Shown: piece after piece, positions 1-57,501 of the stretch
How the letters are laid out: every line of letters starts with the position of its first letter
Numbering within the stretch: the first letter of the stretch is position 1
NCBI RefSeq assembly: GCF_037042905.1
Contig: NC_087255.1
Location: 22,630,001 to 22,694,000, forward strand
DNA from: Lytechinus pictus
Lineage: Eukaryota
DNA: 64,000 bases
Direction: 5' to 3'
Position numbers and translations under genes: made by a program
Notes under the pieces: model-generated
Database searches by the model: none
Told to the model about the DNA's origin: nothing
The model's input: only the letters and a program-made list of their open reading frames with translations

Positions 1-1559
1 AACACCAGGTTGTAGAGACTTTATGTGATAATCCCAATGGTACTGGTCAAGGGTCGACTGTAGAATGGGTTATTGAAAAGGAGTCACATACCCCAATCAT
101 TAGTGGAGAATCTGAAATAGACTGTAGAGACCGAGAAACATCAGTGCTGCCTGTGCCAGAGGTAGAACTTGAAGAGGAGGACAGTACGTTGACCATACCC
201 CTTGGCCTACCTCAGAGGGCAGGTGACCAGGGATCGGGTGATGGAAGGGGAGGAAGAAATAAAGACACCATGTCTAACCTTACTCAAATGGAAAAGAAAA
301 GTGAGGAAACCGTCTCGATGACTGTTGGCAATCAAGGTGGAAGGGGTGAACAATGTGAAGCAAATGAACAAGAAAAAGGCGGTGATTCCGAGAAAGTCAG
401 CGGCTCCCAGGAAGCAGAAACAAAGACAGGCAGCAAAAAGTCAAGAAAATCTGGGAAACTAGTTTGCAGCATTTGTCACTTGGAATTTCCCTCTATTCAT
501 TTTCAACGGAAGCACATCTTTGAAAGCCATAAGGAATGTAGATATTTTTATCAGAAGTGCAGTACCTGTGGTAAAATTTTCACAAATAAAAGCCAATATA
601 AATCCCATGTAATAACCCATGCAGACATTGAAGAAAGGAAGAAGAACCAATGCACAAAGAAAGTTCAATGCAAATGGTGTGATAAAACCTTTGATACTGC
701 AGGTGGCCTTTCAAGACATGTCAATTCTAAGCACACGAAAAAGAGGACATTCCCTTGCGAATTGTGTGGGAAAGTTTTCTATGTTGCTGAGAAGATGAGG
801 ATGCATGTACTATGTCATGATAAAGAAGATAGAGAATTTAAATGTGAAGAATGCGGAAAAGGCTTTGTCGCTTTGTATCTTCTGAAAAACCACAAAGCAA
901 CGGTCCATTCCAATGATCACCAAAGTCTATGTGATCTCTGTGGAGCATCTTTTAAGTATAAGGGAAGCCTTCAACAGCATTATAATACCGTCCACTCCAA
1001 TGTCTACAACTTCGGTTGTGAGGTTTGCGGAAAGAAATTCCAGCGTGCGACACTCCTGAATGCCCATATGAAAATTCATTCCAGTGATGCATCTGCCAAG
1101 CCGTTTAAATGTGAACAGTGCGACAAGTGTTTTCGAAATCGATATAAATTGAAAGTGCATTCGAATTGGCATAATAACATCAGGTCACACACTTGTGAAG
1201 TGTGTGGCAAGTCGTTTCTAACAAATGGTAACTTGACCAAACACATGTATACCCATCAGGACAAGAAACCACATGAATGTCGGATTTGTAACCGAGGATT
1301 TTCTGACATGCCGGCGCTCAGGAGACATCTGGATGTAGTACATAAGATCACCCTGAAGAGAGTCCTATCACGGATGAATCCGAAAGTCACCAAGTCGGCA
1401 GAGACGGCAGCGGTTGATGTCCCTAGTGCAAGGTCACCACCAGCAAAGTCGGGGACTGCTGCATATGAAGGGGAGAGTGCAGAGTTTGGGAACATTGAAG
1501 ATTCTGCTGCCATTGATGGAGAAGTTGGGGAAGCACTTCTAGAAATGATGAATGCTTAG
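1..1559 (+). CDS. C2H2 zinc-finger protein, terminal coding exon (5' partial)
   Basis: Frame is open from position 3 to TAG 1557-1559, so the GTG at 144 is not the real start. An acidic low-complexity region precedes 10 tandem CxxC-x12-HxxxH/HxxxxH fingers (e.g. CEVCGKSFLTNGNLTKHMYTH). AATAAA at 1612. Confidence 0.93.
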   Translation, partial: HQVVETLCDNPNGTGQGSTVEWVIEKESHTPIISGESEIDCRDRETSVLPVPEVELEEEDSTLTIPLGLPQRAGDQGSGDGRGGRNKDTMSNLTQMEKKSEETVSMTVGNQGGRGEQCEANEQEKGGDSEKVSGSQEAETKTGSKKSRKSGKLVCSICHLEFPSIHFQRKHIFESHKECRYFYQKCSTCGKIFTNKSQYKSHVITHADIEERKKNQCTKKVQCKWCDKTFDTAGGLSRHVNSKHTKKRTFPCELCGKVFYVAEKMRMHVLCHDKEDREFKCEECGKGFVALYLLKNHKATVHSNDHQSLCDLCGASFKYKGSLQQHYNTVHSNVYNFGCEVCGKKFQRATLLNAHMKIHSSDASAKPFKCEQCDKCFRNRYKLKVHSNWHNNIRSHTCEVCGKSFLTNGNLTKHMYTHQDKKPHECRICNRGFSDMPALRRHLDVVHKITLKRVLSRMNPKVTKSAETAAVDVPSARSPPAKSGTAAYEGESAEFGNIEDSAAIDGEVGEALLEMMNA

Positions 1560-1689
1560 TCATTCATAGTTTGGCTATGCAGTCGATACCAAGATCTGTT
1601 AGTACGTTGCAAATAAAAAAATGATGAAAATCCATATTTTATTGTTCAAAATAGACATGAAATGAAATACTCTGAAAATTTGCTTTGCC

Positions 1690-1882
1690 CAATTGATTGT
1701 GGGCCCGGCAGCCGCTGTGCAGCGCCAGATCGACGAGGCTCTATCACTTTAATCGTTGAACGCCAAACAGGGTAGCAGCAACTCCCATCTTTTAACGTAT
1801 TTTGATCTGACGCAGCCGGGGTTTGAACCCCGACCTCCTGGTTATGAGACGGAGGCTCTACCAACTGAGCCAACACACCAGT
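1690..1882 (-). mobile_element. tRNA-derived SINE (tRNA-Met-like head)
   Basis: Minus strand has Pol III A box TGGCTCAGTTGG, B box GGTTCAAACC, intact D and T arms and a CTCATAA loop. There is no acceptor stem, and a non-tRNA body follows. Confidence 0.8.
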
Positions 1883-2439
1883 CGTGAATGACTACACACA
1901 ACTGGTGCTCCTCGGCCTTTCTTATGCTGAAAGCTAGATCCCTATGTAGCTGAATTAGCAGCTAAGAACATGTTCCAGTGGTGCATCTAGTTGTTATATT
2001 ATATGCCTGAAATTGCATATTATTATATGATTTTTAATGAATTTCTGTATTTCAAATGTAAAGATGCTTGTTATCGCATTTCTTCATTGGATTTATATTA
2101 AAATAAAGGTAGAACATTGATTTCATAGTAAGTCTTTAAAACCAAGGTTTAATGGGCTTGTGATGATAGTTTGTGTTTGCAGAGCTGGGTGGAGTTGGGG
2201 TGGCCACACCCTTTTGAGACATCGACGAGGGGGGTGGGGACTTTTCATAAAAGGCTGTGCTGAGTAGCTACTTAAACTTCATTAATTTAGCAAAATTATT
2301 GTAAATCAACAAAAAATGCAAGCTCTCCTTTTTTTATTGTATTGATATTGAATTGTTTTTATTATTTGAGTTATATATTTTGTAAAAACGACTGGTTCAA
2401 TTTAAAAAACCTACTCAACACATGGTGGATTTATCGCGA

Positions 2440-2488
2440 AAAGGGGCTGAATCAGCCGCCCCCCCCCCCCCCGACTTATTAGGGTTAA
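2440..2488. mobile_element. Solo piggyBac-like transposon end
   Basis: Ends ...GACTTATTAGGG|TTAA, i.e. a TTAA-CCC terminus on the minus strand. No partner end was found. Confidence 0.35.
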
Positions 2489-3192
2489 ATCTTGGTGAAA
2501 AAACCCCAGATTGTAAACCATTTACATTAACCTCAAGTCTTGTCAAATGATACTAGTTGATCTTTTCAGAACAGCTAAAAATATACAGGGAGCATGTACC
2601 TTTAAGAATGACCATGTACATCTCTATAAATATTGCCCATTCAGGTGTCACTATCAAAATTGATGTTTTGACAGACATGGGAATCTTGGGGTTTTTTGTG
2701 TACTAAAATTCTATGAAATGCTCTATCACCTCTCTCAAAAAAGAAATAACCTTACATATTTATTTTCAAGTAAAATCATATTTGTTTGTTATAAAGCTCT
2801 GTTGAAGAGTGTAGCACATAGCATATAAGAAGAGCAGCCAACAAATGATATCACATTAATCAAACAGAATATGTCTATTCTGCTATTGTTTGATAAGTTT
2901 TGTCATTATCTGAACATATTCTTGTATTATGATGTCCTAGTGGACTTCCATGAAATGGTTCTATTATACATGTAATTGTTGCTTATTTTTTGCATATTCC
3001 TGAGAATCTATTTCAGTAACTAAAATCAGTGAAAATTATTCCTTCTGATAGAGCACTGTATGAAAGAATGAGATGAGATGAAACAGTCGATTTGTTTTGG
3101 TCGTTTGTGAATTTTGTCTGAATTAATCTAGGCAGTCAATGCACATCATCTACCAAAAGTTGATCATAATTCTTCAACATCATGAAGGAAAT

Positions 3193-3737
3193 AATTTGGT
3201 GGATTCACAATACGGTGCGCCATCTGTTGCAGCAAACAGGCCAAATTTCTAACTTTGGGGTCGACATCACGCGCAGGCAGTGCACAGTGCTAGTGAACTG
3301 TAATGTTTCAAAAGTGAAAGCCATTTAACAAGAATTCACAAAAAAACTGTCTAAATTTTGCAAAGAAATATGCTGCAAATTTCTCTCCCACCTCCTGGAC
3401 CCTATTAAACAACATACCTGGTGGGTGTTTCATAAAGCTGTTCGTTAAATAAGAGCCACTTGAAGAACGACTGGTGATCTTTTCTTGTGGCAAATGATAT
3501 ATTCATTGGCGATGGTTAAGCACGCAAGAAAGGTTCACCGATCATTCTTAAAGTTGCTCTTAACTTACGAACAGCTTTATGAAATGGTCCCCGGTCGAGC
3601 CGCGTCGGCCAGCACTGAATATGTGCATGCACTAAAGTACTAGCGCGCGCAACAGATGTCGACATTTTCCTATGAGGCATTTCAGCCTGTCCGATGCAAC
3701 CTATAGATAGCGCACCATATTGTGAATCCACCGAATT
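3193..3737. mobile_element. Non-autonomous TIR element (MITE) with nested MITE
   Basis: The left end AATTTGGTGGATTCACAATACGGTGCGC is inverted at the right end as GCGCACCATATTGTGAATCCACCGAATT. Confidence 0.75.
3418..3594. mobile_element. Nested palindromic MITE (CWG-flanked type)
   Basis: TTTCATAAAGCTGTTCGT ... ACGAACAGCTTTATGAAA inverted arms, lying inside the 3193-3737 element. Confidence 0.75.
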
Positions 3738-4728
3738 GAGCAATAAAATTATCAAAAAAGTAAAGCATTTAATCTACAAAAAAATAGCTGCATGTGAGGT
3801 ATCGGCAACTTGGTATATGATATGAGTTTGCGTAGTGCATGATTACAGTATTGCATTATTTTGTCTCAGGTCCTACTAAAATGTAATTTTTAGAAAGGAG
3901 GAAATTACACTGACCCATACTCATATGTGCTATTGAATAAATTAAATCCATGAAAAAGTTAGCACCTTTTTTTAGGAAAACTGGCGTATACAAACATGCA
4001 CTAACAAAAAACCATAAACACAGGTAGAAAGGATAAAACATTTCCAAACTAATGGAGTTAAAACTAAACTGAATCCCACTCAAAAAGGGACACTTATTAT
4101 TTTATACAATAGCTCTATTTTTGTTTCCGTTTATATGCATTGATGATTTATAATTTGAGATCCATTATTTAATGTATGTCGAATTGCCAACAGGAAAACA
4201 GGTACGTAGGTCTACCTTTGTCAATTCATTGTGGACCACAATGTTTTGCCTAATGTGAAATACGACTCCAAAAGAGATAAATAACACATGTATGCATTCA
4301 CAATTTGGTTTGAAAATCACTTCAACTTTATAGGACAGGTAGAATTATACACAACTGTGTTTATATTCATTGTTAACATTTTCTACTCATTCAAGAACTG
4401 GAGTAGATGAAAAATGATTGAGTGTACTGAAATGATGGTATTTTGGAGTTAAATGGAGATATTACAATCAATCTGTTCGATCCTATCAGGATTAAATATG
4501 AATATTAGCCATGGCAAAACCACAGAAAGTGATTACATGTATCTGTAGGAGGACATTTGTTTTGTCTGTTAATTGTCAGTTTTGACTTTGTAGTATTTCT
4601 TGAAAGAGTATACGTTTTTCTATGGACTATAAAATTATGATAATGTACCAAACAAACCTAAATGGATGTTTTGATACTTTTAATTAGACCCATAATTTGC
4701 ATTTTTGTATTTTTTTTTTTGGGGGGGG

Positions 4729-5525
4729 GTCTCGCCTGCTCATAGGCGCCGCTTTTCCGACGGTGGCGGCATCGTCAAATCTTAATCATAACTTAGGATG
4801 TATATAGGCCTAGTTCATGAAACTTGGACATAATGGTTATCAAGTATTACTGAACATCCTGCCAGAGTTTAAGGTCACATGACCAAGGTCAAAGGTCATT
4901 TAGGGTCAATGAACTTTGGGCAAGTTAAAGGGTATTTGTTGAATTTCCATTGTAACTTTAAATTTTTATGGAGCTAGTTCATGAAACTTAGACATAAGAG
5001 TAATTTAGTATCACTGAACATCCTCTGTGCGTGTCAGGTCACATGACCAAGGTCAAAGGTCATTTAGGGCTAATGAACTTAGATTATGTGGGGGGAATCA
5101 AAATGAAATCTCAAGTTTTTTAAATGTCATAACTGGAAGTATATAGATCTAGTTCATGAAACTTGGACATAAGAGTAGTCAAGCATCAGTGAACATCCTG
5201 CGTGAGTTTCAGGTCACACGACATAGGTCAATGAACTTTGGCCGTGTTGTGGGTATTTGTTGAATTGCCATAACTTTGAAAGTTTTTGGATCTAGTTCTT
5301 GAAATGTAGACAAATGGGTATTCAAGTATCACTGATTGTCTTGCACAAGTCTTCAGTCACACGATCAAGGTCAAATGTCATTTAGGGTCAATGGACATAG
5401 TATTTTATCATCATATGAATGGTGTTTTTTGTAAATAATTATTCTAGTCGTTTTCAAAGTCAGCACTGCTGCTATATTGAATCACGTAATGCAGGCGAGA
5501 CTGCCAGAGGCGGCACTCTACTTGT
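4729..5525 (+). mobile_element. Helentron-associated non-autonomous element (HINE/DINE-1/Tsp-like), copy 1, ~4 internal repeats
   Basis: Subterminal IR GTCTCGCCTGC...GCAGGCGAGAC, 3' mini-hairpin GCCAGAGGC, and ~160-bp internal repeats (CTAGTTCATGAAACTT...GGTCAAAGGTCA). Confidence 0.8.
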
Positions 5526-5744
5526 TTACTCTTTGCAATCTGTTCTTCTCCCTGAAAAAAAAGTGTTCCCCTTGTTTTGAACTCCAATAAATTAAAAACT
5601 GGATAAGATCTTAAATATTTCTTGGTAACCAAGAACATGATGTGCCTAATTAGTGTGACAAATTTGGAGCTAATTTGATGACCCCTCTGTGATAATTTGA
5701 ATGAATCCTCTTTTTTGTCACCTTGCACAACAGTGCGAGGTTAA

Positions 5745-6330
5745 AGGGATGGTCCGGGCTGAAAATATTTATATCTCAATACATAGAGTAGAATTCACTG
5801 AGCAAAATGCCGAAAATTTCATCAAAATCGGATAACAAATAATACAGTTATTGAAGTTCAAAGTTTAGCAATATTTTATGAAAACAGTCGTCATGAATAT
5901 TCATTAGGTGGGCTGATGATGTCACATCTCCACTTTCCGTTTTCTTATGTTATTACATAAAATCATAATTTTTTCAATATTTCATACCTGTGTGAATAAT
6001 ATATCTCCCTTATAATGATTTAAGTTGCAGCAATAAATATCTAATGCACTAAATCAGTTGTCAATCCAATTTTTCTAGTTCTTGGAGGAAAAAGTTTGAA
6101 TAAACCTAATTTCATATAATAAAATACAAAAGAACAAATGGAGATGTGACATCATCAGCCCACCTAATGAATATTCATGACGACTGTTTTCACAAAATAT
6201 TGCTAAACTTTAAATTCAATAACTTTGTTGTTTGTTATCCGATTTTTATGAAATTTTCGGCATTTATTTTTGCTTAGTGAATTCTACTCTATTTATTAAG
6301 CTATACATACTTTCAGCCTGGACCATCCCT
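5745..6330. mobile_element. Kolobok-like MITE (TTAA TSD)
   Basis: TTAA|AGGGATGGTCC...GGACCATCCCT|TTAA with ~190-bp inverted arms. Same family as 56361-56973. Confidence 0.85.
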
Positions 6331-6500
6331 TTAAGTGCGCTTCAATAGACTTGTCAACTTTTAATCCCTCTTTTCTCAAAAGTTACATTCTATGGTGGTG
6401 AATGTTCTTATCTTTATTGTGACAATGCCTTGAATTTTCAACTGGATCTTTGTCCTGTGGTGATGATCAAGTTGTGATGGATGCATGAAAATGACGGGGC

Positions 6501-6600
6501 GGGTCCACAAGGCCGATGGTTCATGAGGCCGACGGTCCACGAGGCCGATTAGTTTTCCCACGAGGCCGAGGGTCCACAAGACCGAGGGTCTGCGAGGCCA
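6501..6600. repeat. ~16-bp minisatellite (GGTCCACRAGGCCGA)n
   Basis: About six degenerate GC-rich units in AT-rich surroundings. Confidence 0.7.
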
Positions 6601-7331
6601 ATTTTTCTCATCTTGTATTTTCTTTCATTGTAGGATGTTTGTCTATATCAGTGAAAAAGTTTCCACTTAGCATATTTTCCAATGAAAACTGAAATATAGG
6701 CCTAATCTTATAAGTTGTGGATGATAACGGACATTAATTTGGTGAAGCTTTGGTAAATCGAGACATGATTTATTCTCTAGTATCATCTCACTTTCTGATC
6801 ATTAAAAAATGTGGCTGTTGAATCAATTTTCAGCCATTTTTTCTTTGCAAAACTTTAGTTTGGAAGATTTACTTGTTATTATTTCTCTGTTATGGTTTAT
6901 ATATTTTTTTTTCTTGGAATGTAGAGTTTATTCCATTTCACAACAGCAAGATATAGACAAACATAAGTTGACAAAGTGAAATATACCAATGACCTTTCAA
7001 CTGCCAAAATCTGGATTTAAATTATAATTTCAAGATATGAATGTAATTTTTTTGATATTAGAAAGAAATCTAAAATATTTAAATACAAGCCGAATGTCTC
7101 GATCTGGATTTGTCATTAAAAACTAATGAATTTTTACTTATACATTATAGTTTGCCCGCAACTTATTCACTACAATATTGCCTGTTATAGCCATGACTTA
7201 GTTGACATTGATGAAGCGAAGACAAATATCCTGATAAAAAAAAAATCCCAATGATTTGAGAAAAAGCAGCCTCAATCGTGGACCCTTGGTTTTGTGAATC
7301 CCTGGCTTTGTTAGAAGACACTGAAATTACT

Positions 7332-7480
7332 ATGATGATGATGGCGATGATGATATGGTGGTGGTAATTGTGATGATGATGCATGATTGAATATGCATGA
7401 TGATAGATTGTGATGATGACGACGAAGGCGGTGGTGCATGGTGATGATGTTGATGACGGTACTAGTGGTCGTGGTGGAAC
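7332..7480. repeat. Degenerate (GAT/GGT)n microsatellite
   Basis: Directly visible trinucleotide run. Confidence 0.8.
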
Positions 7481-7840
7481 TGGTTATCGCGGGAAAGTCT
7501 GTACTGGCGCTCGACTGGGGGGGGGGGCCAATAGTATTTTGAGACCCCAATTTTAAATCAGCCTAAATTTCTGTTCCAGCATCACCAATTTAGATATAGC
7601 CAGAGAAAGTCCTATTTTCCCCCATTCCGGAGACCCTAAAATTTGTGTTTCTTATTCCAGTGCGCTATCTAAAGTTATAGCCGGCCTACCATGCCTATAA
7701 ACGTTACCATGTACGGTATGAGTATTCTTTAGTATGTGGTGGGGACATGGAAGTCTTAATTGTCCATGTTTAGCCTCCAAGAGCCGTTCTGGAGATCCCC
7801 ATTTTAAGAGTAAGTTTGAGTTCCAGAGCCTCCTATTTAA

Positions 7841-8259
7841 TGGCCACCGCACATCTTACGACTGTTCGCAATCCGATTTTGGAACAAATCGCATTTTGCT
7901 CATTTTCTGAAAATGTGAACGGAACATATTTCATTTTAGGTTAATAATTGAAAGAATACTAGTATAACCATTTTGAAAGATTGCAAGCCTTTATTTGGAG
8001 TAAAAGCCAAATTAGTTTCAAATCGTAGCCAATTGTACGACTGCTATGACGTCATTACGACTAGATATTAAATTTGCTTTTATTCTAATAAGTATGATAC
8101 CCGGGATGATAGCATAGTCACAGATTTGAACATAGGTATTTGTACGATGATTTCGAACATAACACAGTAAGATTTCAAGTCTCAATATTAGCATAAAATT
8201 CTACTACATCTTATTCCAAAAGTGAGTCGCAGACCAATCGTAAGGTATCCGGTCGCCTT
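7841..8259. mobile_element. MITE with imperfect TIRs
   Basis: GGCCACCGCACATCTTACGACT...TTTTGGAA at the left versus TTCCAAAA...AATCGTAAGGTATCCGGTCGCC at the right. Confidence 0.6.
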
Positions 8260-8284
8260 TAGACTTTGGTTTGGCACATAGCCC

Positions 8285-8679
8285 CAGTGTTTCCACTCTT
8301 CACGAAATTTTGACTTTTTCCAGGAAAGGTTCGGGAAATGAAAAGAAATCAGGAAATTCCGGGAATCCGAAAATTACAATTACACAACAATTAAATGTAG
8401 CAACTTTTAATATTCATGTTAATTCTAAATAATTGTTAACCTCGACACGTAGCTAAAAAATTTCCGCTCGCATGTAATTTTGTTCCTATTTTCAAAGAGG
8501 GCGTGGACAAAAATGTACTATATTCCTTGACTTGGGTCACATGGACCAAATTTAGGCTCGCTGTATTATTGCCCTATATTGAAAAAAATCATACTTGAAA
8601 ATTCCAGGAAATGTCTTTGAATTTCGGGAAATTTTGGATTCAGTTTCAGGAAATTTATTTTGGATCTGTGAAAACACTG
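8285..8679. mobile_element. hAT-type MITE
   Basis: TIR CAGTGTTT(C/T)CAC and a perfect 8-bp TSD CATAGCCC (8277-8284 and 8680-8687). Subterminal GGAAA repeats. Confidence 0.88.
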
Positions 8680-8784
8680 CATAGCCCCATATGCACCGCG
8701 GGCACGGCGCCGCCCTAGCCTAGAGCCAAATCCGTTCATCGTTTCTTTTTTCCGTGTGATGTCCCACCGACCGATGCTGTCAGC

Positions 8785-8840
8785 ATGTCGGGGAAGAAGT
8801 TCATGGGAAATGATGGCGATTGGGTATGCAACAACGGAAA
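8785..8840 (+). CDS. ZRANB2: ZRANB2 exon 1 (MSGKKFMGNDGDWVCNNGK)
   Basis: ATG at 8785, donor GTAAGT at 8841. Confidence 0.92.
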
Positions 8841-11800
8841 GTAAGTGATTTAGTCGTAAAGAATTGACTGGGTGATAATCAGGATAATTATTTGGATTAT
8901 TGTTGGTGAAGTGAAAATGAGAACGATTAGTGCTTGGTAATGCTGCGTTTTTTGGTAGAGTGTGATTTGTATTGCATTGCCCCACTAATTGAAATCTATG
9001 TGTGGGCGCGGCGTTTGGAAAGAATGAGAAGGGATAAAGAGAAGGGAGGGAGGCGCTACGACGTCTTCTTCAAGCTACACTGACTGCCTCCTTCAGTCCT
9101 GAAGATTCTTGCAGTAGTACCGGGGACCGGCAGGTGCAATACACCGGGTGAACACCCTACTCTGACAAATTGGTTTTAACGTGACGTGCATAGGTTGTGA
9201 ATGGCTATACAGTTTTACACATGATACACCGGACCAACATTTGCGTCCTTTCCGATGGACGGAGTGTTTTCCAACTGCATTCACACCCGCACTGAACACA
9301 GCTCGGTGAGGCATGCTAACACACAATGCTAGCATAAGTTTTTTTTGTTAGACGTCTTCTGCCTTTTTCTGGCATGCTGCGGGACTCGAACCCACGCACG
9401 TTGATAATATCAGTCAGTAGTCGGCGCTGGTCTGAAAATTATAATTATATTAGGATTGTCCCAGAAAATGGATATCATAAACCAAGACAAATTGTGTCTT
9501 GATAAATTGAGATTGTCCTTGTTTATGGGGCCTGGGGGCAGGTTTTTTCACGTAGACATAGCCATAGGGTCTACCTCAATCAAGTCAAGTGATGTTCGTG
9601 CATGCTCCATCTCTACAGTCAGAGTACAGGTACGCTCCACCTAAGGCCCAAACATCAAGGTCCAAAACTCACTCTGATTCTTCAAGTGCATCCTCCGGTT
9701 AGCCTCAATGTGCTAAAAATTGGTGATTTAGAGCCAACACCGAGTTACACACGTATAATTCACTGCCGATTTCAAAACATCGCATGTGCGAGTGTCCGGT
9801 TTTGCTCTGCTGAGACTTTGTCTGATCCCCTCCGTCAATAGACCAAAGTCTCCCATAGTCATAGAACTCGTAGTTGATGATGCTTTGCATGGCGCTGAAC
9901 TATAGCGTCTATGGAGAAAATAGTGCACTACCGCACCCTCTTCGGCTGTTCAGTTACTCTTTTATTCCCCCTTTTGACGGAGAAAACAAAGCGTGTCACT
10001 GTGACTGAAAAAATTAAAACAATTGGCTTACCAGTTTCTTATAATATATGATTAAAGATCCAAAAATTGAATTCCAAAGAGTTGATGTCCAGTTCCAACG
10101 ATCAATTGTCCTTTTTCTTTTGCAGCTTGAGCATATAATGCGCCAGCCAATCATGTTTGTGTTACTTCTACAATGATACTCGGCAGGATCCATAAGTCAG
10201 GATGTAGTGCTAAGGAAATATCTTGGGTGCTCATCTGCAGTGCATACATGTTACCAATAACTGAAGTCTAAAGTGAATAAACCGGAATTCTCAACATCTA
10301 TTTTTTAGGGGGGGTTGAGGTGCATATGGAACTCTTTCTGCAAACTTATTTGAATAAAGAAGACAGAAGCTCAATTTTGGTACATTCAAAGAATTTAATC
10401 ACTGATAATAAAAATAATAGTAAGAGAGAGATGGAGAGTGAGTCCACTATGATACATGTATGAATTTGAGATGAAGCACCCTCTTTGGCGACATACAGTG
10501 CGTGGTATGACAATCTCCTTTGCAGAAGCCATTGTACAGAATGGTAATTTTGGAACAAAATGGAGAGGTCTGTGACATGCCAATCCTGCTTCTGATGAAT
10601 TTCTTTGTTTAGAAATCAATTCTGTTGTATACTTGATGGATATTGGAAACTATATTTATTGTATTTTGTTCTTATTTCTAACATCCAATTATCAGAATAC
10701 TGGATTCTGACCAGCACCACCCTGGCGGATATTCTAGAACAAAACAATTTCGACATGACTTTGGTCTAACCTTAAAATATTTATTAACCATTGTCCACTT
10801 GAATTTTGAAAACGGGGATTTTGCTCTTTTGTATGTAGTATCGTAATATAATGAATTGTGGTTTTATATTTTGTAGGTGTAGCAATGTGAACTTTGCAAG
10901 AAGAACTCACTGCAACAGATGTGGGGCGGGTAAGTTTATTTTTATTAACCTATTGACTACTTGATTGCATTTTTATAGACTTCATGCATGAACCACACTG
11001 TTCCAGTGGGCATTGCGTTAAAAACCTTCAAAAAGTAATCTTCCAGACAAAATCATTAGAAAAGTTAATTAACCTCAGGTTCATAAACTATTATGAATAC
11101 AATTTATAGAGTTCAGATTTTGTGTAAGCGTTGATCAATGTCTATTTACTATGTTAACATTTTATGGCCATCAAACAAGATGAACTGTGACATTATTTTT
11201 ACCTTAAGAATAGTGCACCCCCCCCCCCCCACACACACACATTGCACCTCTCCCCTTTTGGATTTCATGATGAAAGTAATACCCTTTTGTAATGAAGATG
11301 CTTATTTTGTTTTCTTGTCAGATTTTGCTTTGCAACAAAACTTTTTCAAAAGAACCCCGTTTGTTTTGCTTGTCAACAAATTTTTGCCAAACTCATTGAA
11401 CTTTTTCAAGTATCCAAAGGTGTAATAAATTTATCCCTTTGAATTGCTTCAACTCTTCAATTTTCACTTGCCTCAGATATTTTTGCGCCTTTTTGAAAAG
11501 TTGCCTTGCCCTAAAATTACAAGTCCAACCTAACAAAAAGTTGATTTGAATGAAAGAATGAAAATCAAACACCCACTCACTTTTTCTTTTGTTTTTCATT
11601 ATATGACATATAAAATATTTCAATTTTCTCCTCATTGTCATGTAAAACAAAGTTTTATTCCTCCCTGAACATGTGGAATTACCATTGTTTAACATTTTGG
11701 GGTTCAATATAATGGGTCTTTATTGTCAAATCTGTAAAAAAAAAATGAAATATTGTATCATTCAAACGATAAAAACAAGAAATTGAGGGACATCATTGAC

Positions 11801-14800
11801 TCTCTCATTGGCATATCAATGAGTTGTGGATATAACTGTTTTGTGAAAAATTAGCAAAATTCAAAATGCCACAACTTTCTTATTTTACATCTGATTTTTT
11901 GAAATTTTTGGCGTTATGCTTCTTTGACTTTTCTCTACGGTATTTACTAAACTTAACTTTTTTTGGGGGTTGGACTTGACCTTTAAGGTCTGCCCCCCCC
12001 CCACCATTATGAAATCTTGGAGCCATCATGCATCATTACATTTATTTGATATCGTCTATTTTCAGAGAAGAGTCGAATGAAGATAAAAGATGGAGGCCTG
12101 ATCATTGGAAAACAGATGGCCGAGAAGAGTCATGGTCTATTCAGTGCTGATGATTGGCAGTGTAAGATGTAAGTATACTGTCATACCATCCACCTGACTG
12201 TAAAAACTGTATTTCTATAAAGGTTGAATTTCCAGATTACTTTTAATATTTTCCCTCAATTGAGCAGGATCTAAAGAACTAGGCCTAAAGCCATTTTTTA
12301 ACACTGGAATCAAATAATGTTTTTCTCATTCCGAACTATTGATGTAACTAGTGTTATTAGTGCACTTTCTGCTGATCATCATATCTGAGAGTAAGTTTGA
12401 TGTTATTTTTGTTACAGCTTCAAATCAATTAGTTCTGGAAGCGTGACTAGCATGTTGTATTTCTTCATTTTCTTATCCAAATTCATCAATGTCTCCCATT
12501 AACATTGGGTCGCCAATTCATGTAATAATATGTTGCATTTATGAGGCACTGGTTAATGTTGCACTCTATGCATTGTATAATTCATACTATAATCCATGGG
12601 ATGCCATTTTCTCGCTGCAAATGTCAGCTGATGTATCTGTAGCCTTGGTTTTTGTCTCACCTGCATAGGAGAGTGAGACTATTATAATAGGCACCTTTTT
12701 TCCGACGGCCTATGTTGGAGGTAATTATTACATGGCTGTCATAACTTTCAAAGTTTATGGATATAGTTTATGAATTGTGGACATAGGGGTAATGAAATAT
12801 CACTGACAAGTCTTAGATGACATGATGAAGGTCAAATGTCATTTAGGGTCAATGAACGTATTGTATCATTATTATATGAATGTTTGTTTTTTTTAATAAT
12901 TATTTTAAAGTAGTTTTCAAAGTCAGCACTGCTACTATATTGAATCGCATAATGCAGGTGAGACTGCCAGAGGCGCTTGTCATTTTTTGCCCATGTGCCA
13001 TCCTTGGGCCACAGCACAACATATAACTGGTCTACACCAGTTTGGAATCAAATAACATGGAAATATAAACAAGTAGAATTATCCTATTTGAGGTTCATGA
13101 TAATCCTAGGAATATCAGGGGTTTTTTTGTCACTAAGCAAAGAAAAGTCAAATTGGGAATTGAATTCAGATCATCAGTAGACAATTGAAACTGAGAATTC
13201 AACTAAGTCAGAGAATTCAAGTAATTATCATGATAATAACATTCAGCATTATTACTATAAGTATGATGACTCGGAACTTAAGACAGTAAGATGTTCCATG
13301 TTTTAATGTTTACATTGATAAAATGTTATAACAGTCTATTCGAATTACAGACCAATCATTAGGTGTTCAGTGGCCTGTAGTGGCCTTTTAATCCGTAACT
13401 GTGTATTCACATAATTTTAACCAAAAGAAAAATAGGTGAAGGCTTCATATTTAATTTTATTCCCAATGAACACTTTCTAAATCGTCATCCATCATTGTTC
13501 ATCTTGTTGACGGATACAGGGAATAATTTTACTCCTAAATTTGAATTTTGATTAGCATTTCTAGTAAAAAGAGAAAAGATTTCAACTATGTTCTGAACAG
13601 TCCTGTAAAAGAAATTGCTACAGATTTTTTTTTTGTCAAGCTGTCATAAAAAAGTGTAAAGCAAATTGTGATGTGATACCAGGAAATTTTTCCCCCATAT
13701 ATGTTTAACATACAATTGATCTATTCCTCAGAGGCTCTGATTAACACTCTTATTGCTTTTCCCCTCCCACCCCACCCCTGGTCCCCTCCCTGTTCACCAA
13801 CCCCTCCCATTTTGATACTGATAAACAGGTGTGGTAATGTCAACTGGGCCAGGAGGAATGAATGCAATGTTTGTCACTCACCTAAATTTGGAAAAATTGA
13901 GGAGAGAACTGGTAAATATGGAATTCTTTCATTATTTATTTGTTTGTATTTGTTTTAGGTTGGGGTTAGCTTTCATTAAGTTATATAATTTGAAATGTGC
14001 AGTGGCAGCAGCCTACTAGTATAATAAAATCATAGAGAGATACATAGACGCACATCCACAATTGAATTTGTATATAGACTTATTTTCATGGATAGATATT
14101 AATTAAATTTTAATGTAGTTATCAAATTTGTTTCTCAAAAGAACATAGATCAATAAGGTTTCTTTTAATTTACTCTTTACTTCATTTTTAATTAAGTTTA
14201 TTTAAAATTTCAAAATTTATTGGGTTTTTTTTTTTCATTATTAATAGTTCAGTTCACCCAGGCACTTTGTCAACACATATTAAGACTGCCCAATAAATAT
14301 GTAGTAGAAGAAGTTGTCGTATAGTAAAAAAAAAAGTTGATGTATACATTATGGATGTTTTCTTTGCAGATTTCCGATACTCAAATTGTGTTTTAAGAAT
14401 GACTTCACTATGCATCCTAAAAAGATAGGCTAAACTTTAATCCCTTGTCTTGGTCTTATGTTCATACTTGTATCTTGTATAGGGTATGGAGGTGGATTCA
14501 ATGAGAGAGGTACAGTGGAATACAGAGAAGACAGGGGGTCTGATTCAGATGAAGAATATGATGAGGTTTGTCAGTCGGGTCTTTAAAGGGGAAGTTCACC
14601 CTAAAGAAAAGTTTGTTGTAAAAATGACAGAAAAAAGGAATGAAAAACATTGGTGAAGGTTTGAGGAAAATCTGTTAAAGATTAAGAAATTTATTAGAAT
14701 TTTAAGTTTTAGATTTGTAACGTCATAAACGAGCAGCTGCCCCATGTGTTATGTAATATAAAATGCATGAATTTCATTTTTTTGATGGATACTGATGACT

Positions 14801-17020
14801 TATATTTGTTTTCTTTTCATGATCGGGTGTGAAATGACTTGCCTATTGATATACAAAAGGTATAATAAAAACCATTTTCAATTTTCTGAGAAAATGACAT
14901 TTCATAGATTTTTTTTCCACTCGCTATGTAGGAATGCTGCTCGCATATGACATCACAAATCAAATCAAAATTCTAATAACTTTTAGATTCTTTGAGGGAT
15001 TTTCTCAAACCTTTGGCAATATTTTTTCTGCTATTTTTACAATAAACTTTTTGTCAGGGTGAACTTCCCCTTTAGTATGTCTAGTTCGCATGAAGAAAAT
15101 ATTACACACAAGACGGGGAGGGGGGGGGATTGCTTGTCGGCTTTGCTGACTAAAAGATTCAATTGATTTGCTATTACTAGCAATAGTAAATCACTTTATT
15201 TTACTGTTGCACAAAGTACAATTTCAAATGATCAATTTTAACAGAATAGATCAATTATTTGAGATTGAAATTTGCAATTAATTGCAAATAAGCTTGAAAA
15301 AATCCACATCCTTTTGTTGTTACTTGGCAATATCTGACAGAGATAAGCAATTATAGATTGAAATAGATTTTTTCAGTTAGGTAGCAATACAGTAATCTTC
15401 CACAGTTATATCAATACAATGTACACCATAATTTAACCTGTCATGGGACTCAGTCATATAATAGTTGCAAGAAGATTTGGATATTTGTTCAGAATAAAGG
15501 TGGAGGATAAGGCGACCTATACTGTATGAGGTTATCTTTTATCTTTGTCTTTTTACTTTCATTTTCTACTGGAGCAACCTATTGTTGGAGCAAACGTCCT
15601 GGAATCGGTCCAAAATGATTTAATTTTTTTTTATACTTTTATTCAACAGTTTGGTAGAAGAAAGAGGAAATTTCGCATATCTGATGACCAACCAAAAAGT
15701 ATACTCAAAGAGGTAGATGAAGAGAAGGAAGGCGAAGATGACGAAGAAGAGGAGGAGGAGGACGATGAAGGCAACCTCGATGCATATAAATTGGATTCAG
15801 ATGTAAGCATTGATATTCTTTGTTGGCATCTGGCAATGGATTTTTTTTCGGGGGGGAGGGTAAAAGCCAGTAGGAAATCAAATCGTGCTAGGATTAGTGA
15901 TTGCAATATTCAAATGCTCATAACTTTCTCATTATTTGTCCGATTTTTCTCAAACTTTCTTTGTTCTTATTCTTTGATTATTCTGTTTCGACACAAGCCT
16001 ACTTGTTCAGATCAGAAGAGGATTTTATTTACCTTCATTGTTATTTTTCATTGACGTAGGATGATGATGATGAAGGTGGCGATCTCTCAGCTTATGCGTT
16101 AGTGGACAGTGATACGGAAAAGAAGCCATCCGGGCCAGCAGCGTCGTCGTCATCTGATACGAAGTCCTCTCAGCACTCATCCTACCGGTCAAGGAGTTCC
16201 AGTTCTAGCCGGTCCCGGTCAAGGTAACCGGGTGGTCATGTGATCAGTCACCTGACCCACATGACCGGTGTTACTCATGTCACCTGATAAATGTAGTGTT
16301 CAAATACAAGAACTGTGCCATTTGCAGCTGATCTAAACGGGTTCTTTATTACAAGGAAATTCCTGTGACTTTGATAGGGAGTTTTAAATGACAAATTCTA
16401 ATGAAGCAGAAGAATATAAAATAGATGATTTGCCATTGCATACTTCTATTCTTGACTCTTATTCGATGACGGCAAATACTTGAGACTAGTTGATGCAATC
16501 CAATTTCATTAATTTTCCTCTTTACTCTTTTGTTGGAGAATGAGGTCAAACCATTCCAACAGTCATTGTTTAGGATTTTTATTGGGGATTAAATCTTTCA
16601 GAGTTTACCCCTCTATGAGGTGTCTGCACAAAAAACACAGAATTTTGTATCCATCTTTCATTGTGTATTATTACACCTTCTCCGCTCCTCACATTTCTTT
16701 TCGTTTAATTACGTTCCAGATCTCGATCCAAGGATCGCAGATCCGGTACATACTCTAGATCCAGATCCAGGTCCGGAAGCCGAGATCGCAGACGGTCTAG
16801 AGATCAGAAATCACGTTCCCGCTCCAGGAGTCGAGATCGCAGAAGATCAAGAGATCGCAGGTCACGTTCGCGTTCAAGGAGTCGAGACCGGAGACGATCT
16901 GGGTCAAAGTCATCTAGTTCATCATCAAAGCATCGGCGGTACTCAAGGTCATATTCAAGGTCAAGATCAAGGTCACCATTGAGGAAGGATTACAAGGACA
17001 GAGGTTCACGCTACTACTGA
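8785..17020 (+). CDS. ZRANB2: Zinc finger Ran-binding domain-containing protein 2; join(8785..8840,10877..10929,12066..12168,13829..13911,14483..14565,15650..15802,16060..16223,16720..17020), 331 aa
   Basis: All introns are GT-AG with consistent phases (996 nt in total). Two RanBP2 fingers ([47 protein letters not shown]), then EERTGYGGGFNER, YDEFGRRKRKFR, an acidic tract and a C-terminal RS domain. Confidence 0.96.
9080..9430 (-). mobile_element. tRNA-derived SINE in ZRANB2 intron 1
   Basis: Minus-strand B box GGGTTCGAGTCCC (9381-9393), with central CCGTCCATCGGAAAGGACG and CCCGGTGTATTG motifs typical of invertebrate SINE bodies. Confidence 0.6.
10877..10929 (+). CDS. ZRANB2: ZRANB2 exon 2
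   Basis: TTGTAG|...|GTAAGT; encodes [17 protein letters not shown]. Confidence 0.95.
11511..11986. mobile_element. Kolobok-like MITE, internally deleted
   Basis: Right end TGGACTTGACCT|TTAA and degenerate left end ACAAGTCCAACC. Homologous to 29445-29933. Confidence 0.7.
12066..12168 (+). CDS. ZRANB2: ZRANB2 exon 3
   Basis: TTTCAG|...|GTAAGT; encodes KSRMKIKDGGLIIGKQMAEKSHGLFSADDWQCK. Confidence 0.95.
12654..12980 (+). mobile_element. HINE copy 2 (short, ~1 repeat)
   Basis: GTCTCACCTGCA...TGCAGGTGAGACTGCCAGAGGC termini as in the other copies. Confidence 0.8.
13829..13911 (+). CDS. ZRANB2: ZRANB2 exon 4
   Basis: AAACAG|...|GTAAAT; encodes [27 protein letters not shown]. Confidence 0.95.
14483..14565 (+). 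CDS. ZRANB2: ZRANB2 exon 5
   Basis: GTATAG|...|GTTTGT; encodes YGGGFNERGTVEYREDRGSDSDEEYDE. Confidence 0.95.
14587..15071. mobile_element. Kolobok-like MITE
   Basis: TTAA|AGGGGAAGTTCACCCT...AGGGTGAACTTCCCCT|TTAG, beginning 21 nt into intron 5. Related fragments at ~28600-28730 and 50220-50343. Confidence 0.85.
15650..15802 (+). CDS. ZRANB2: ZRANB2 exon 6
   Basis: CAACAG|...|GTAAGC; encodes FGRRKRKFR and an acidic tract. Confidence 0.94.
16060..16223 (+). CDS. ZRANB2: ZRANB2 exon 7
   Basis: ACGTAG|...AAG|GTAACC; encodes DDDDEGGDLSAYALVDSD...SRSSSSSRSRS. Confidence 0.9.
16720..17020 (+). CDS. ZRANB2: ZRANB2 exon 8 (RS domain, stop)
   Basis: TTCCAG| acceptor. RS domain built from ~17-aa SRDRRRSRD..SRSRSR repeats. 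TGA at 17018-17020. Confidence 0.92.
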
Positions 17021-17129
17021 GACCACTACTAGGTTAAAGGTTTGACTGGTTGCGCTGTACATAATGTATCACATTTAATACTTAACATTCAACTTGAATG
17101 ATACCATAATATATAGCTATAATAATATG

Positions 17130-17417
17130 AATGATGATGATTATACTTGCTTATATAGCGCTTAACACTTACTTTATCATAAGTCTCTAAGCACTCTACA
17201 GTAATGCAGCATAACTACCTTGGCTTTAGCAGAACAACTGCTATGTGCGCTGCATTTCAAGGAATAAATTCCTACCAGGTACCCTTTCACCTCGCCTGGG
17301 TTGAGTGCAGAACAATGTGGGTAAATTTCTTGCTGCAGGAAAATGCCCCATTGGCTTGGAATCGAACCCATGTCCCTCAGATTGAAAGGCGAGAGTCATA
17401 ACAACTAGACGACGCCT
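17130..17417 (-). mobile_element. tRNA-derived SINE with L2-like tail, antisense in ZRANB2 3' region
   Basis: Minus-strand B box GGTTCGATTCC, core ...CCCAGGCGAGGTGAAAGGGTACC, and tail AAGCGCTATATAAG plus (ATC)n. Related to 53050-53767 and 60200-60510. Confidence 0.8.
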
Positions 17418-17633
17418 TCAGCTATTATATAGGCCTATGACTTTTCAGACATTTGCGGTAATTTCACTTAATATTAATGTTATAGGTTGCATGGTGATTG
17501 CTGCTACATTGGACCTTTTTACTCTGAGCTATCAAATTGATATTCAGAGTATTATTTTTTTAATAAATATCTTGCTGTTTTAAAGCAGGATTATATCAGT
17601 TACTTGATTCAGTACTAGATAGTCAAGAATGTT

Positions 17634-17724
17634 GATATGATGACAATGATGATGGATGATGATGGTGTTGGTGATGCTGATGGTGGTGGTGATGATGATG
17701 ATGATTATCGTAATCATAATGATA
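17634..17724. repeat. (GAT/GGT)n microsatellite
   Basis: Directly visible. Confidence 0.8.
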
Positions 17725-17918
17725 ACATATTAAGTTTGCTAGCGAAACAAATATGCTCGGTTATACCAAGAATTTTGGGTAAATATTAGTTGCACCAATA
17801 GTTTATTTATAAATGATTTTCCAAAAAATGATTTTTTTTGTTTTCTTTGAATGTGATATAGATATTGATGAGATGAATATGTGAGAGATGATCCTTTAGT
17901 AAAGAAGATTTAGACATA

Positions 17919-18240
17919 TTGGCCAGTATTCTGAAATCAGGTTGAACTTAGATTATGGTCTAAATCTGTTCTGAAATTATGGATAGCCAAACAATAAAAT
18001 TTTTGTTTACATTGTAAGCCTCTCATGTTTACTGTGCTCTTACCTAATTCTTTAATGGTGAAGACAACTATCTTATTTATCCTCCCAAGACAGTTCAGAA
18101 TGATTTAAGAGTCAAAAGAGCTGATTCATTGAATGTCTATTCAATATTGTTAGAGAATTATGTCACGATCAGCTATCCATAGTTAAACCACAACTTTATA
18201 CCAGAGTTTGAATTAAACCGTACGTCAGAATACGGGCCAA
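17919..18240. mobile_element. MITE
   Basis: TIR TTGGCCAGTATTCTGA / TCAGAATACGGGCCAA. Confidence 0.75.
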
Positions 18241-18759
18241 TTTTGCCAGCCATATTTTGAAGTATAATCATTATTATTAATCGAAGCCGTTGATTTAAAT
18301 TTACTACGAGTATTTAAATATTTAGAATTTAAAAAATATGGAAGATAACAGATGTACGATAATTTTAGAGCAGCAAGATTTCATTTTTTTAGGTGCCTTT
18401 ATTGAGGATTCTTCTTTCAAAATAAGTTGCACATTATTTGTTGTACAAATGTATAACAATTTCAGGAATGAGGACACTTTTTTTAAATCTAATTGCATAT
18501 ACTGTCAATGGATTGCTGCTTTCATGTCTAATGATAATTATATTTTATTTTCCTGTTTTGTTTTTACAGATTTATTCACGAAGAGCTGTCGGTGATATTT
18601 CATTAGAACATCAAGTTTGGTTTGTGAAGGTACCATGTGTAATAAAAATTATGTAGGTAAGTCATTAGGTATCACAGATAGGAAGGTATGTGGTCTAACG
18701 TGTGCATATTGGCAATTATAGTAGATTTCAGATTTGTGTACATTCATGCTTTCGTCTAC

Positions 18760-19380
18760 TTAATGTCTCTTTCTTTCTGTTCTTGCCTGCTATGCTGCTA
18801 TCTTTCATCTTTTCTCTCTTACCTTCTTTCACTCTTCCTTTCTCTCTCTCTCTCTGTTTTCCCCCATTCTTCTTTCTCTGACATACCTTCTTTTCTTTGT
18901 CTGCTTCCCTCCCTTCTTCTGTCCCTACCTTCCTCACACTCTGTTTTTTTTTCTGCCATCCCTCTCTGTTTCCCTCCATTCTTTCTTTGACCTGGGTCCC
19001 ATAACACAAAGGTTAGCGATTAATTGTACGATTGATTTTTACGATTGATTGTACATTGTAGTCAATGCAATCAATCATCAGAAAGTATTCAATGATGATT
19101 GCTAAGTTTTTGTGTTACGGGGCACCTGTTCTCCCTCAATTCCTCACACTCTCTATCTGCTTGTCTCACTATCTCCTTGTCTCACTATCTCTTCATCCCT
19201 CCCTATCTGTCTCTCTTTTTCTTTCATGTCCTCTTTCTCCTCCCTTTCCCTCTCCTTTCTCTTTTCCCTATCAGTATCCCCTCCTTTTTTCAATCGTAAA
19301 TGTGCTATTTGCCCCCTCTTTTCCAAAGTGATTTCTCAATTTCTTTTTTTTCTGTTTCTTTCTCCCATTTATTTCCTCTC
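18760..19380. repeat. CT-rich low-complexity tract interrupted by a MITE
   Basis: Polypyrimidine on the + strand. It generates the spurious Leu/Ser/Phe-rich and Lys/Arg/Glu-rich ORFs. Confidence 0.75.
18995..19125. mobile_element. CWG-flanked palindromic MITE (PIF/Harbinger-like)
   Basis: CTG|GGTCCCATAACACAAAG...TTTGTGTTACGGGGCAC|CTG. An inverted sister copy lies at 41903-42037. Confidence 0.8.
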
Positions 19381-22244
19381 AAAATAAGTTTGGCAATGCA
19401 TTTGTTAAAGTGTTAAGTGTCAAAGGAATCGATGTTTTCATTGATGCATTACTTGTTGAAAAAAATTGAAAAAATATTACGCTGCTTCCTACCAATTTTG
19501 TCAATATTCTAGATAATATTATATTTTAAATGAAAATGTCAATTCTGGTACAAAAATTGGTGTCGTTTTCAACCTACATTCATATTTTACTGGTATATAT
19601 GCGTTAGAGTAGACCCTTTTGCAGAAATTTCCTTTTACGCCCAGCTGTCATAAATTCGGAAGTTCATGCAGCTGAAAATAAGTTAGACAATCTCCTCGAC
19701 ACCCTAATTACCTTCATTAACTTTGCACTTAATTGTAATTTGGTGATTGTACATGTTTTGCTTATTCATTATTAAAACAATAGGCTACAAGTATAGACTC
19801 TGGGCTGATCTCTAATTTATGGAAACAGGCGTATATTCAATTATTAATGGCTTAGCACATGATGTTGAATTTTTCCTTTTAAGGGTTTTCATAGTTGATG
19901 TTTCATTTGGAAAGTTCTTTTAAATAATACACCTAAATTGTGTACTCATTTAGTAATCTATGGGATAAAAATGCAATAATTCAAGATTTTTTTTTTTTAA
20001 TAAGCGCTATCTACATGTATGCTCATACACTTCATTTCTTTGTTGCCTAATTAATAATAGAATAATGTTATATCTGAGCAGTGTCCACCGATTTACAATA
20101 ATCTCATATTCCTATCAGATATATTTACATTTAAGTAATATCAATTTTACTGTATAGCATTATACTCTGGTGAATATTAGGAATTTGAGCAAGAATTAAA
20201 ATTTAACAGAGCAGTCTGTACTTAAATTTGATGCACATTTACAACTGCCAAACCAATAAAGGCAATTAGTTGTTTTTCTTCCAGTTTTTCAAATAGAACA
20301 TCAGCGATATAAATATCATTCATCTCTAGTCAAACAATGAATTGTTCCTTTGAACTATTAAGGTTTTAAAGCTTGCAGTGTTATCTAAATTTTGAAATGC
20401 TGCCTTTTCTGCAAAGAGAACTTAAAAAATCAAGATGTAAATATTTTTTCAGTACGAAAATGTAAAAACTTGAGTGTACCATGAAATTGTGCCTCGCTTT
20501 TCTACTACACTTTTCTATAATTTACGTATTCCATACAACAAAGATCAAAATATTTTTGTTGAACCTCTTATCATTGTATATGAGAACACATGAAGAAACT
20601 TTTGATTGTTGAATTTTGGGACCCCATGTCCATAAAATCTGAAGTTCTGCTACATTAGACTATAGCAGCATTTTTATACATGCTACAACTACAACTATAG
20701 TACTGTAATAATGTAGTCAACTCAACATATGTATTACATTGAATTGGTAGTATTTGTACTTGCTTTGACTATCATTCTAATACATTTGGCTAACTTTTTT
20801 TCAGCCAGAAATACATACTCCTTTTATACTAGTATGGGTCCATTTTTGCAGTTTTGATCCGTTCGAACAGTACATCTTCAAAATTGGTAATGACAGTTGC
20901 AAAAATTAAGATGAGATTAGAGATACCTCAAATTTAAAAATACTAGCTCTGGTCCAATAAAAAAAAACATTGGTAAACCAATTTAAGTCACTTTTGGTCA
21001 TTAAATCAAAGAATAAATGCAAAATCAGCCACCAAGAAGCGTCCATGTTTAATGTGATTGAAATTTTGAAAAAATTAATTACTTTTTGAGTATTTTATTG
21101 ATTTCATTTAAAACATGACCAGTTTGTAGATTCTTTAGAATTTCTCTATTAAAGTAGATTCATGGATGTCACTTGTAGGATATTGATAGGATAATGTGAA
21201 TATTAGAAGCTACTGCCTTGTTGAATTTACATTTATGAAGATTTGTATTTATTTATACCAATTTTGTGAAATCTATTTATCCATATCATTTACGTGTTTG
21301 TTTTTATAGAAGTATGGAATAATTCCCTAGTTTTAATTTTGTAGCGTTTATTACATGTAGAATTTTATTTTGAATGAACAAAAACAGTTTTCATGGAATA
21401 TCCTACTTGCATTTACACAGATAATGCATGTGCTCACCTATAACAAAAAGCATAACTAGTATGACTCGTTCTCAAGCTCTTCACCAAATGATTTTTCCAA
21501 TCTAGAAATGTTTTCGATATGACATTGCACTCATCACTTAATATTTTTTTCAAAAACAAAATATTTCAAATACAAGCTGACTGAATGATTATATTAAATG
21601 GTCACAGGCTCAATACAGGTAACAGCTAAATTTTCATTTGTTACCTACTTTTGCTGTTAGATTGTTAAAAAGTAATAAAGGCTAAGTTGCTGCTCAATTT
21701 TATATCACTATGCTGTTGTATACTTGTTTTTTTTTCATTCAAAGCTTCTTATGTGATGTTGAATATATTTGAAGAAGTGGAAGATTATGACTGGGAGGTG
21801 GGTATGCATATTCTTATAGAGCAGTGGATCGTGCTCTTTTAATTTCAACCAGCATAACTGAGATGAAGCAATACAGGATATTCAGTTTATATATACACTT
21901 ATTGAAGATGATCGTGACTGGGAGGGGAAATTTTAATATTTTGTTGCGGTTTTGAAAACGTGCAATACATTTGAAAGCTCTTTGGATCAAGGGCAGCTCT
22001 ACAGACTTTCAGTAGCCATCTTAACATAGGTATATTATTATTATCATTTAAGGAGAATTGAAAATGTTTAGCAGTACCTAAGACATTACAAGTGGAAGAC
22101 TGGACTCTTCAGCGACTTTTTTTTTTTTAAATGCTAATTTTGTTCGTGGGATGGGCACCAAACAGCTTCAGGTAGGTAAGACTTTTTAATCGGAATGCAC
22201 TTGTGTATAAAACATGGAGGAAATGAAAGAGAGGGTGAGACGGA

Positions 22245-57351: not shown

Positions 57352-57501
57352 NNNNNNNNNNNNNNNNNNNNNNNNNNNNNNNNNNNNNNNNNNNNNNNNN
57401 NNNNNNNNNNNNNNNNNNNNNNNNNNNNNNNNNNNNNNNNNNNNNNNNNNNNNNNNNNNNNNNNNNNNNNNNNNNNNNNNNNNNNNNNNNNNNNNNNNNN
57501 N
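57352..57501. other. Assembly gap (150 N)
   Basis: Run of N. Confidence 0.99.

Follow-up and report, generated by a model that had tools for sequence, protein, structure and literature searches.

What role, if any, do 5′-splice-site-like sequences play when they crowd the far end of a gene whose own protein reads such sequences? The question is raised by the ZRANB2 gene of the window (the whole 64,000-nt stretch of DNA that was analysed). A preliminary description placed an acceptor at 18570, ∼1.5 kb past the ZRANB2 stop, with AGGTA motifs at 18628, 18655, 18667 and 18684 (61 nt) and AATAAA at 18641. All these elements are present in the sequence, and the TGA stop codon (17018-17020) indeed lies 1550 nt before 18570.

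The exons of ZRANB2 are all on the + strand of the window (Table 1). Judged by the encoded protein, which has two N-terminal RanBP2-type zinc fingers, an acidic centre and an RS domain at its C-terminus, the gene is a ZRANB2 (ZNF265/ZIS) orthologue. The best PDB match of finger 2 (exon 4) is finger 2 of human ZRANB2 (2k1p/3g9y, E 2.2e-8), and the residues contacting GGU in the human structure, i.e. W, RR and N of NVNWARR..C.N, are kept. Pfam model PF00641 matches both finger exons with scores slightly under the curated cut-off because each exon carries part of a finger. The gene also encodes a GYGGGFNER stretch, listed between the finger exons and the FGRRKRKF exon; exons 6-8 translate into FGRRKRKF and an acidic run, followed by a Ser-rich stretch and by RS/RD repeats over ∼100 aa.

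Table 1. Coordinates of ZRANB2 exons, 3′-end elements and motifs in the window (a slash within a motif marks the splice point)
Feature	Position	Strand	Evidence and remarks
ZRANB2 start region	near 8785	+	encodes MSGKKFMGNDGDWVCNNG
Two RanBP2-type finger exons	near 10874-10933 and 13829-13911	+	
FGRRKRKF/acidic exon (exon 6)	15650-15802	+	
Ser-rich exon 7	16060-16223	+	ends in phase 2
Exon 8, RS-domain coding	16720-17039	+	junctions 16223→16720 and 17039→18570 (stranded RNA); open frame 16709-17017
Constitutive 3′-UTR intron	17040-18569 (1530 nt)	+	spliced reads in X19 and X20; holds dispersed repeats ∼17076-17469 and ∼17864-18257
Branch-point-like CTAAT, polypyrimidine tract and ACAG acceptor	18529-18569	+	sequence; acceptor used in RNA
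Start of non-coding terminal exon 9	18570-18827 (minimum extent, one contig)	+	X1 contig; orientation of X19/X20 reads
AGGTA no. 1, AAG/GTACCA, weak donor-like	18628-18632	+	sequence
AATAAA, candidate proximal poly(A) signal	18641-18646	+	sequence; CA at 18663-18664
AGGTA no. 2, TAG/GTAAGT, 8/9 to the 5′ splice-site consensus	18654-18662	+	AGGTA at 18655, as AGGTAAGT
AGGTA no. 3, TAG/GTATCA, weak donor-like	18667-18671	+	sequence
AGGTA no. 4, AAG/GTATGT (18683-18691), 7/9, running into a GU-rich tract	18683-18706	+	candidate poly(A) downstream element, putative function
Long CT-rich tracts and a dispersed repeat (∼18849-19242) in the presumed long 3′ UTR	18750-19390	+	very high two-strand depth at 18849-19242
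Probable 3′ UTR continuation, long isoform	19243-21400	+	X1 contigs at depth 25-33; X19/X20 reads nearly all in ZRANB2 orientation, at lower depth

In a protein-representative search, the 51 aa of exon 6 matched just two fragments at the exon level, both from environmental contigs, one of them on a 1.2-kb contig without the 3′ end of the gene. A homologous-protein search with the longest stop-free stretch that includes an exon, 174 aa in length, gave no match under a 1.75x length limit that leaves out full-length proteins of ∼330 aa. No exact match to a 100-aa ORF in the terminal exon was found, and the RS exon had no match in metagenomes. In the genome (811 Mb), exon 7 and the segment with the motif cluster occur once each, which leaves no retrocopy of them as a proxy for the mRNA structure. 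Known RNA families gave no hit in 9000-22000.

The structure of the 3′ end was read from RNA: two raw-read runs of the same species, stranded and depleted of rRNA (X19 and X20), and contig runs (X1 and X5, the latter from organism B, a close relative). The junction 15802→16060 is covered by 21 reads in each of X19 and X20 and the junction 16223→16720 by 17 and 14 reads, respectively. A third junction, 17039→18570, with GT-AG ends and skipping 1530 nt, has 18 reads (15 starts) in X19 and 15 reads (10 starts) in X20; use of the 18570 acceptor is thus level with that of the constitutive junctions. This junction lies 3′ of the main stop, so that a 3′-UTR intron is present in both stranded runs, and read depth is 0 in those bins of 17040-18569 that are free of repeats. 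The stop codon is followed by 19 nt of 3′ UTR up to the donor AAAG/GTTTGA at 17039/17040 (the preliminary description came close with a donor 'near 17032', while the actual site is 17039/GT). Since the partner of 18570 is this donor, 19 nt past the stop, the sequence from 18570 onward is a non-coding terminal exon.

The X1 contig spanning 18568-18827 has a depth of 34, against 47 for the contig of exons 7-8 and ∼7 for introns, i.e. 73% of the coding depth. It crosses all four AGGTA motifs unspliced. All X19/X20 reads on these exons and on 18455-18848 are in ZRANB2 orientation. On these observations we hold with high confidence that exon 9, the last exon of ZRANB2, constitutive and non-coding, begins at 18570. 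The four AGGTA motifs remain in the mature mRNA.

The earlier claim that an exon starting at 18570 is real, belongs to ZRANB2 and has a used acceptor is therefore borne out by the 17039→18570 reads. The role assigned to that exon has to be revised. A splice from exon 7 (16223, phase 2) into 18570 would indeed encode R-FIHEELSVIFH up to the TAG stop at 18604-18606, as had been calculated, but a cassette bypassing the RS exon does not agree with the RNA. Among the junctions listed for X19 and X20 are 16223→16720 and 17039→18570, with no 16223→18570 and none leaving 18629, 18656 or 18685, which excludes abundant use only, as low-level events could be missing among those listed. Exits at 18629 or 18656 had been proposed; the 18568-18827 contig runs through both. 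The RNA junctions exclude an RS-less isoform (exon 7 to 18570) as a main product, and FIHEELSVIFH is not a tail encoded by the main mRNA, where the exon is entirely 3′ UTR. With the entering junction alone among those listed, no other upstream partner and a contig unspliced to 18827, the exon does not behave as a cassette or poison exon.

The position of the intron bears on mRNA stability. Under the exon-junction rule, NMD depends on a distance of 50-55 nt (PMC3384923); the ZRANB2 stop is closer than that to the last junction, and the normal mRNA should therefore escape the rule. Downstream, the transcript appears to be long: one X1 contig extends beyond 21400, and the same-strand signal past that point suggests a long 3′ UTR.

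Several repeats lie in or near these introns and the presumed UTR. The first repeat of the 3′-UTR intron (17076-17469) reaches two-strand RNA depth of up to ∼1600x in the raw-read runs and is also high in organism B. Its minus strand carries a box-B-like stretch, GGAATCGAACCC, which suggests a tRNA-derived SINE; ARAGORN found no intact tRNA in it, and tRNA-like genes were absent from the whole of 17000-19400. The second (17864-18257), high in depth in both species, has 70-nt inverted arms (17918-17987 and 18172-18241, 73% complementary) and appears MITE-like. A further high-copy repeat occupies intron 6 (15894-16090), with contig depth ∼17,000 in both species. The repeat at 18849-19242 has very long CT-rich tracts on either side (18750-18990 and 19120-19390). 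Within it, opposite strands are joined in RNA reads at 19017/19076, and a short hairpin lies at 19036-19083. Elsewhere in the window we observed a C2H2 zinc-finger ORF upstream of ZRANB2 (144-1559, 471 aa), a single-exon ORF ∼18 kb downstream (37030-38526, 498 aa), a reverse-transcriptase-like ORF (45136-48162, 1008 aa), which is probably from a non-LTR retrotransposon, and runs of N at 55605-55784 and 57352-57501.

The motif cluster sits at the beginning of the terminal exon. The full hexamer AGGTAA occurs in one of the four motifs (no. 2); the other three are AGGUAC or AGGUAU in RNA. Outside the four, the + strand has no AGGTA between 17277 and 21617. When 9-position donor scores against CAG/GTAAGT were computed over 17040-21400 (4.3 kb), only two sites reached at least 7/9, both inside the cluster. 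The trinucleotide GGT occurs seven times in 18570-18700 versus ∼1.5 expected, a density of 7 per 131 nt that is also reached at 12 other places in the window. Two of these GGT form the pair GGT-ATGT-GGT (18685/18692) with a spacing of 4 nt; the remaining GGU spacings are 9-24 nt. A stable fold over 18570-18720 was considered and rejected, as folding is no better than in shuffles (z = +0.73); the RNA should therefore be accessible as a single strand.

How unusual is the cluster? The + strand of the window contains 53 AGGTA (∼1 per 1200 nt); the frequency of one per ∼950 nt assumed in the preliminary description was slightly generous. The cluster exceeds chance: with uniform placement, a group of four AGGTA within 61 nt at any point of a single strand of the window has a probability of ∼0.001. 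Dinucleotide-preserving shuffles of the gene region (9000-21700; 3000 shuffles) gave at least four in 61 nt with P = 3e-4 (one occurrence) and at least three with P = 0.005. A small, old duplication may underlie the three 12-13 nt units that begin with TAGG, in which case the significance of the shuffle P-value would be inflated. We also found that 13 other 5-mers of like abundance cluster 4-in-56-nt somewhere in the window.

At the genome scale (811 Mb), AGGTAAGT with two further AGGTA after it, within 12 and 25 nt, was counted 22 times at ∼15 loci, mostly (AGGT)n microsatellites; the pattern was built from the present instance, so its rarity is overstated and the count is taken only as a sign that no common repeat is involved. 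Triple AGGTA with gaps of at most 25 nt are found 14,088 times and are dominated by a 15-nt satellite unrelated to the locus. A satellite or dispersed-repeat origin of the cluster itself was discarded: the segment is single copy and unlike the AGGTA-containing 15-nt satellite. On such counts the cluster is a genuine statistical oddity, and a regulatory reading of it is plausible.

The motifs surround a candidate proximal poly(A) site. The exon has its first hexamer 72 nt in, the AATAAA at 18641; another AATAAA or ATTAAA follows only at 19771, 1.1 kb on. In sequence terms the layout of a poly(A) site is complete, with AATAAA at 18641-18646, a CA 17 nt later and a GU-rich tract at 18684-18706; the 5′-splice-site-like TAG/GTAAGT and AAG/GTATGT overlie the predicted cleavage zone and the downstream element. 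Depth corrected for exonic share at 18570-18651 is ∼27 in X19 and ∼19 in X20, comparable figures for coding exons being ∼19-32. At 18652-18848 it is 9.6 (X19) and 6.4 (X20), a ∼2.5-fold fall, and further 3′ it is ∼1-7; with bins 197 nt wide and a CT-rich tract from ∼18750 prone to the read filter, the dip may be a filter artefact. The fall after 18652 would agree with partial termination near 18660 and additional sites beyond it, and we take it as suggestive; reads over the segment gave no report of places where many molecules end.

Sequences of organism B differ from the ZRANB2 locus by ∼1-6% in coding exons and by ∼10% in aligned introns and distal UTR. Its exon 8 contig (X5) is bounded exactly by 16718/16720 and 17039, and we infer that the 3′-UTR intron is probably common to organism B. 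Part of 18455-18651 is aligned by its contigs (mean depth 25.7); none is aligned in 18652-18848 at a level of at least 88%, where divergence, contig end or filtering is possible, and the gap speaks weakly against three of the four motifs being conserved. The coding exons of organism B show two small in-frame changes: 6 nt are absent from the acidic run of exon 6 (15734) and 6 nt are added to the Ser-rich run of exon 7 (16164). The low-complexity coding tracts of exons 6 and 7 change by slippage.

The best explanation that we can offer joins the terminal-exon structure with a regulatory block, and as a whole we give it nearly an even chance. Its regulatory part, taken separately, is possible but doubtful: the block of 5′-splice-site-like motifs, read by U1 snRNP and/or ZRANB2, may tune the proportion of short and long 3′ UTRs. 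The cluster would act as a docking block for readers of 5′ splice sites, namely U1 snRNP and possibly ZRANB2 through its GGU-binding fingers. With the block occupied, the proximal site would be masked and processing would take place at distal sites, giving a long UTR that extends beyond 21400; with the block free, a very short 3′ UTR (∼110 nt) would result. Suppression of nearby poly(A) sites by U1 snRNP (telescripting) is established (PMC10404622). A ZRANB2 finger binds the GGU core in AGGUAA, and the native protein favours tandem GGU 2-5 nt apart (PMC11789483); the pair at 18685/18692 is the sole one within the reported spacing. A fuller version, in which ZRANB2 would sense its own level at candidate AGGUA/GGU sites on the first cleavage zone, competing there with U1 for the two consensus 5′ splice sites, and in which the result would be a short UTR, a long UTR or an NMD-inducing extra splice, seems to us unlikely.

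The regulatory block has to be weighed against the possibility that exon 9 begins as an ordinary 3′ UTR in which the cluster serves no particular factor. It would derive from the GU-rich downstream element of a minor poly(A) site and from a small local duplication of 12-13 nt units initiated by TAGG(T/A)A, and its match to the ZRANB2 motif would be coincidental. This is a possible reading that we would not call probable. Every transcript seen reads through the cluster, one full AGGTAA is found among the motifs, and the 13 comparable 5-mers that cluster 4-in-56-nt elsewhere in the window speak the same way; so does our literature search, which gave nothing specific on ZRANB2 autoregulation or a ZRANB2 poison exon. 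The unaligned stretch of organism B (18652-18848, at least 88%) also points to coincidence, although that hole may come from the filter. Against coincidence stand the shuffle P of 3e-4 within the gene, the two consensus-grade 5′ splice sites unique in 4.3 kb, and the fact that the motif was set by the known RNA specificity of the gene's own product, not freely chosen.

Under the cassette model of the preliminary description, ZRANB2 bound to its own pre-mRNA would pick between polyadenylation at 18641, the RS-less isoform made by joining exon 7 to 18570, and splicing from 18629 or 18656 leading to NMD. The motif agrees with the established AGGUAA/GGU specificity, the finger residues are conserved and the phase arithmetic is right; moreover, splicing from 18656 would put a junction 106 nt past the stop, beyond the 50-55 nt rule (PMC3384923). 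NMD targets would be scarce at steady state, so that their absence is weak evidence. Still, joints of 14-21 reads appear among those listed with no 16223→18570, 18629, 18656 or 18685 joint beside them, and the acceptor is used constitutively from 17039, hence the exon is not a regulated cassette; we consider the model quite improbable. The donor at 18656 (or 18685) may alternatively belong to a cryptic second 3′-UTR intron whose acceptor lies behind the CT-rich tracts (18750-18990 or 19120-19390), 18570-18656 then being an 87-nt internal exon and the spliced product an unproductive isoform targeted by NMD, independently of ZRANB2 binding. The consensus donor TAG/GTAAGT, the very long pyrimidine tracts with AG dinucleotides after them and the drop of X19/X20 depth after 18652 would all suit such an intron, but no joint of this kind is among those listed, X19/X20 depth shows no recovery downstream and the X1 contig is unbroken over 18568-18827. 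We rate this intron as very unlikely.

The solid result is a corrected gene model, with a constitutive 3′-UTR intron 19 nt past the stop and a long terminal exon, in which the 18570 acceptor belongs to the ordinary architecture of the gene. Beyond it, a gene for a reader of 5′-splice-site-like RNA bears a rare cluster of such sequences around a candidate poly(A) signal in its own mature 3′ UTR. Were the cluster functional, the locus would offer a compact and testable case of U1 versus an SR-like zinc-finger protein in the choice of a 3′ end; in sea-urchin-type embryos, morpholino and mRNA-injection tests are routine. Should self-binding of ZRANB2 hold, it would add a further instance to a type of circuit already known, and self-sensing, if true, would give splicing factors with RanBP2 zinc fingers their first described autoregulatory circuit. 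An unconserved cluster would be a cautionary example of motif coincidence.

Genes of SR proteins (SRSF2/SC35 and SRSF1) are autoregulated by 3′-UTR splicing coupled to NMD. ZRANB2 resembles them as a splicing-regulator gene with a 3′-UTR intron and with terminal-exon donors which, if used, would give a junction >55 nt past the stop; it differs in that no junction leaving the cluster is among those listed and in that self-binding and a response to the level of the protein are putative. In the late 3′ UTR of papillomavirus, U1 snRNP inhibits polyadenylation via 5′-splice-site-like elements. The feature shared with such U1 suppression of poly(A) sites (papillomavirus; telescripting, PMC10404622) is an unspliced consensus 5′ splice site tens of nucleotides from an AAUAAA in a terminal exon. 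Classical U1 elements sit upstream of the hexamer, whereas those of ZRANB2 coincide with the predicted cleavage zone and downstream element, in an invertebrate and with a putative effect.

The 3′ end of vertebrate ZRANB2 (human isoforms a and b; PMC3384923) is organized alike, with an RS exon, a last intron of ∼1-1.5 kb and a terminal exon with a long UTR, and the human isoforms arise by alternative processing in the region of the last intron (PMC3384923). The human last exon encodes C-terminal residues (PMC3384923), whereas here the stop is 19 nt before the intron, which is purely 3′ UTR. The human intron holds an alternative LINE-derived exon with a premature stop (PMC3384923), while the reads analysed here contain no alternative exon. 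In comparison with the known recognition of RNA by ZRANB2 fingers (PDB 3g9y; PMC11789483), the cluster is unlike in that its other spacings are 9-24 nt, three flanks are not AA and the GGU core is short and common. It is alike in presenting, in RNA predicted to be single-stranded, one AGGUAA, four AGGUA and seven GGU in 131 nt, with one 4-nt pair among them.
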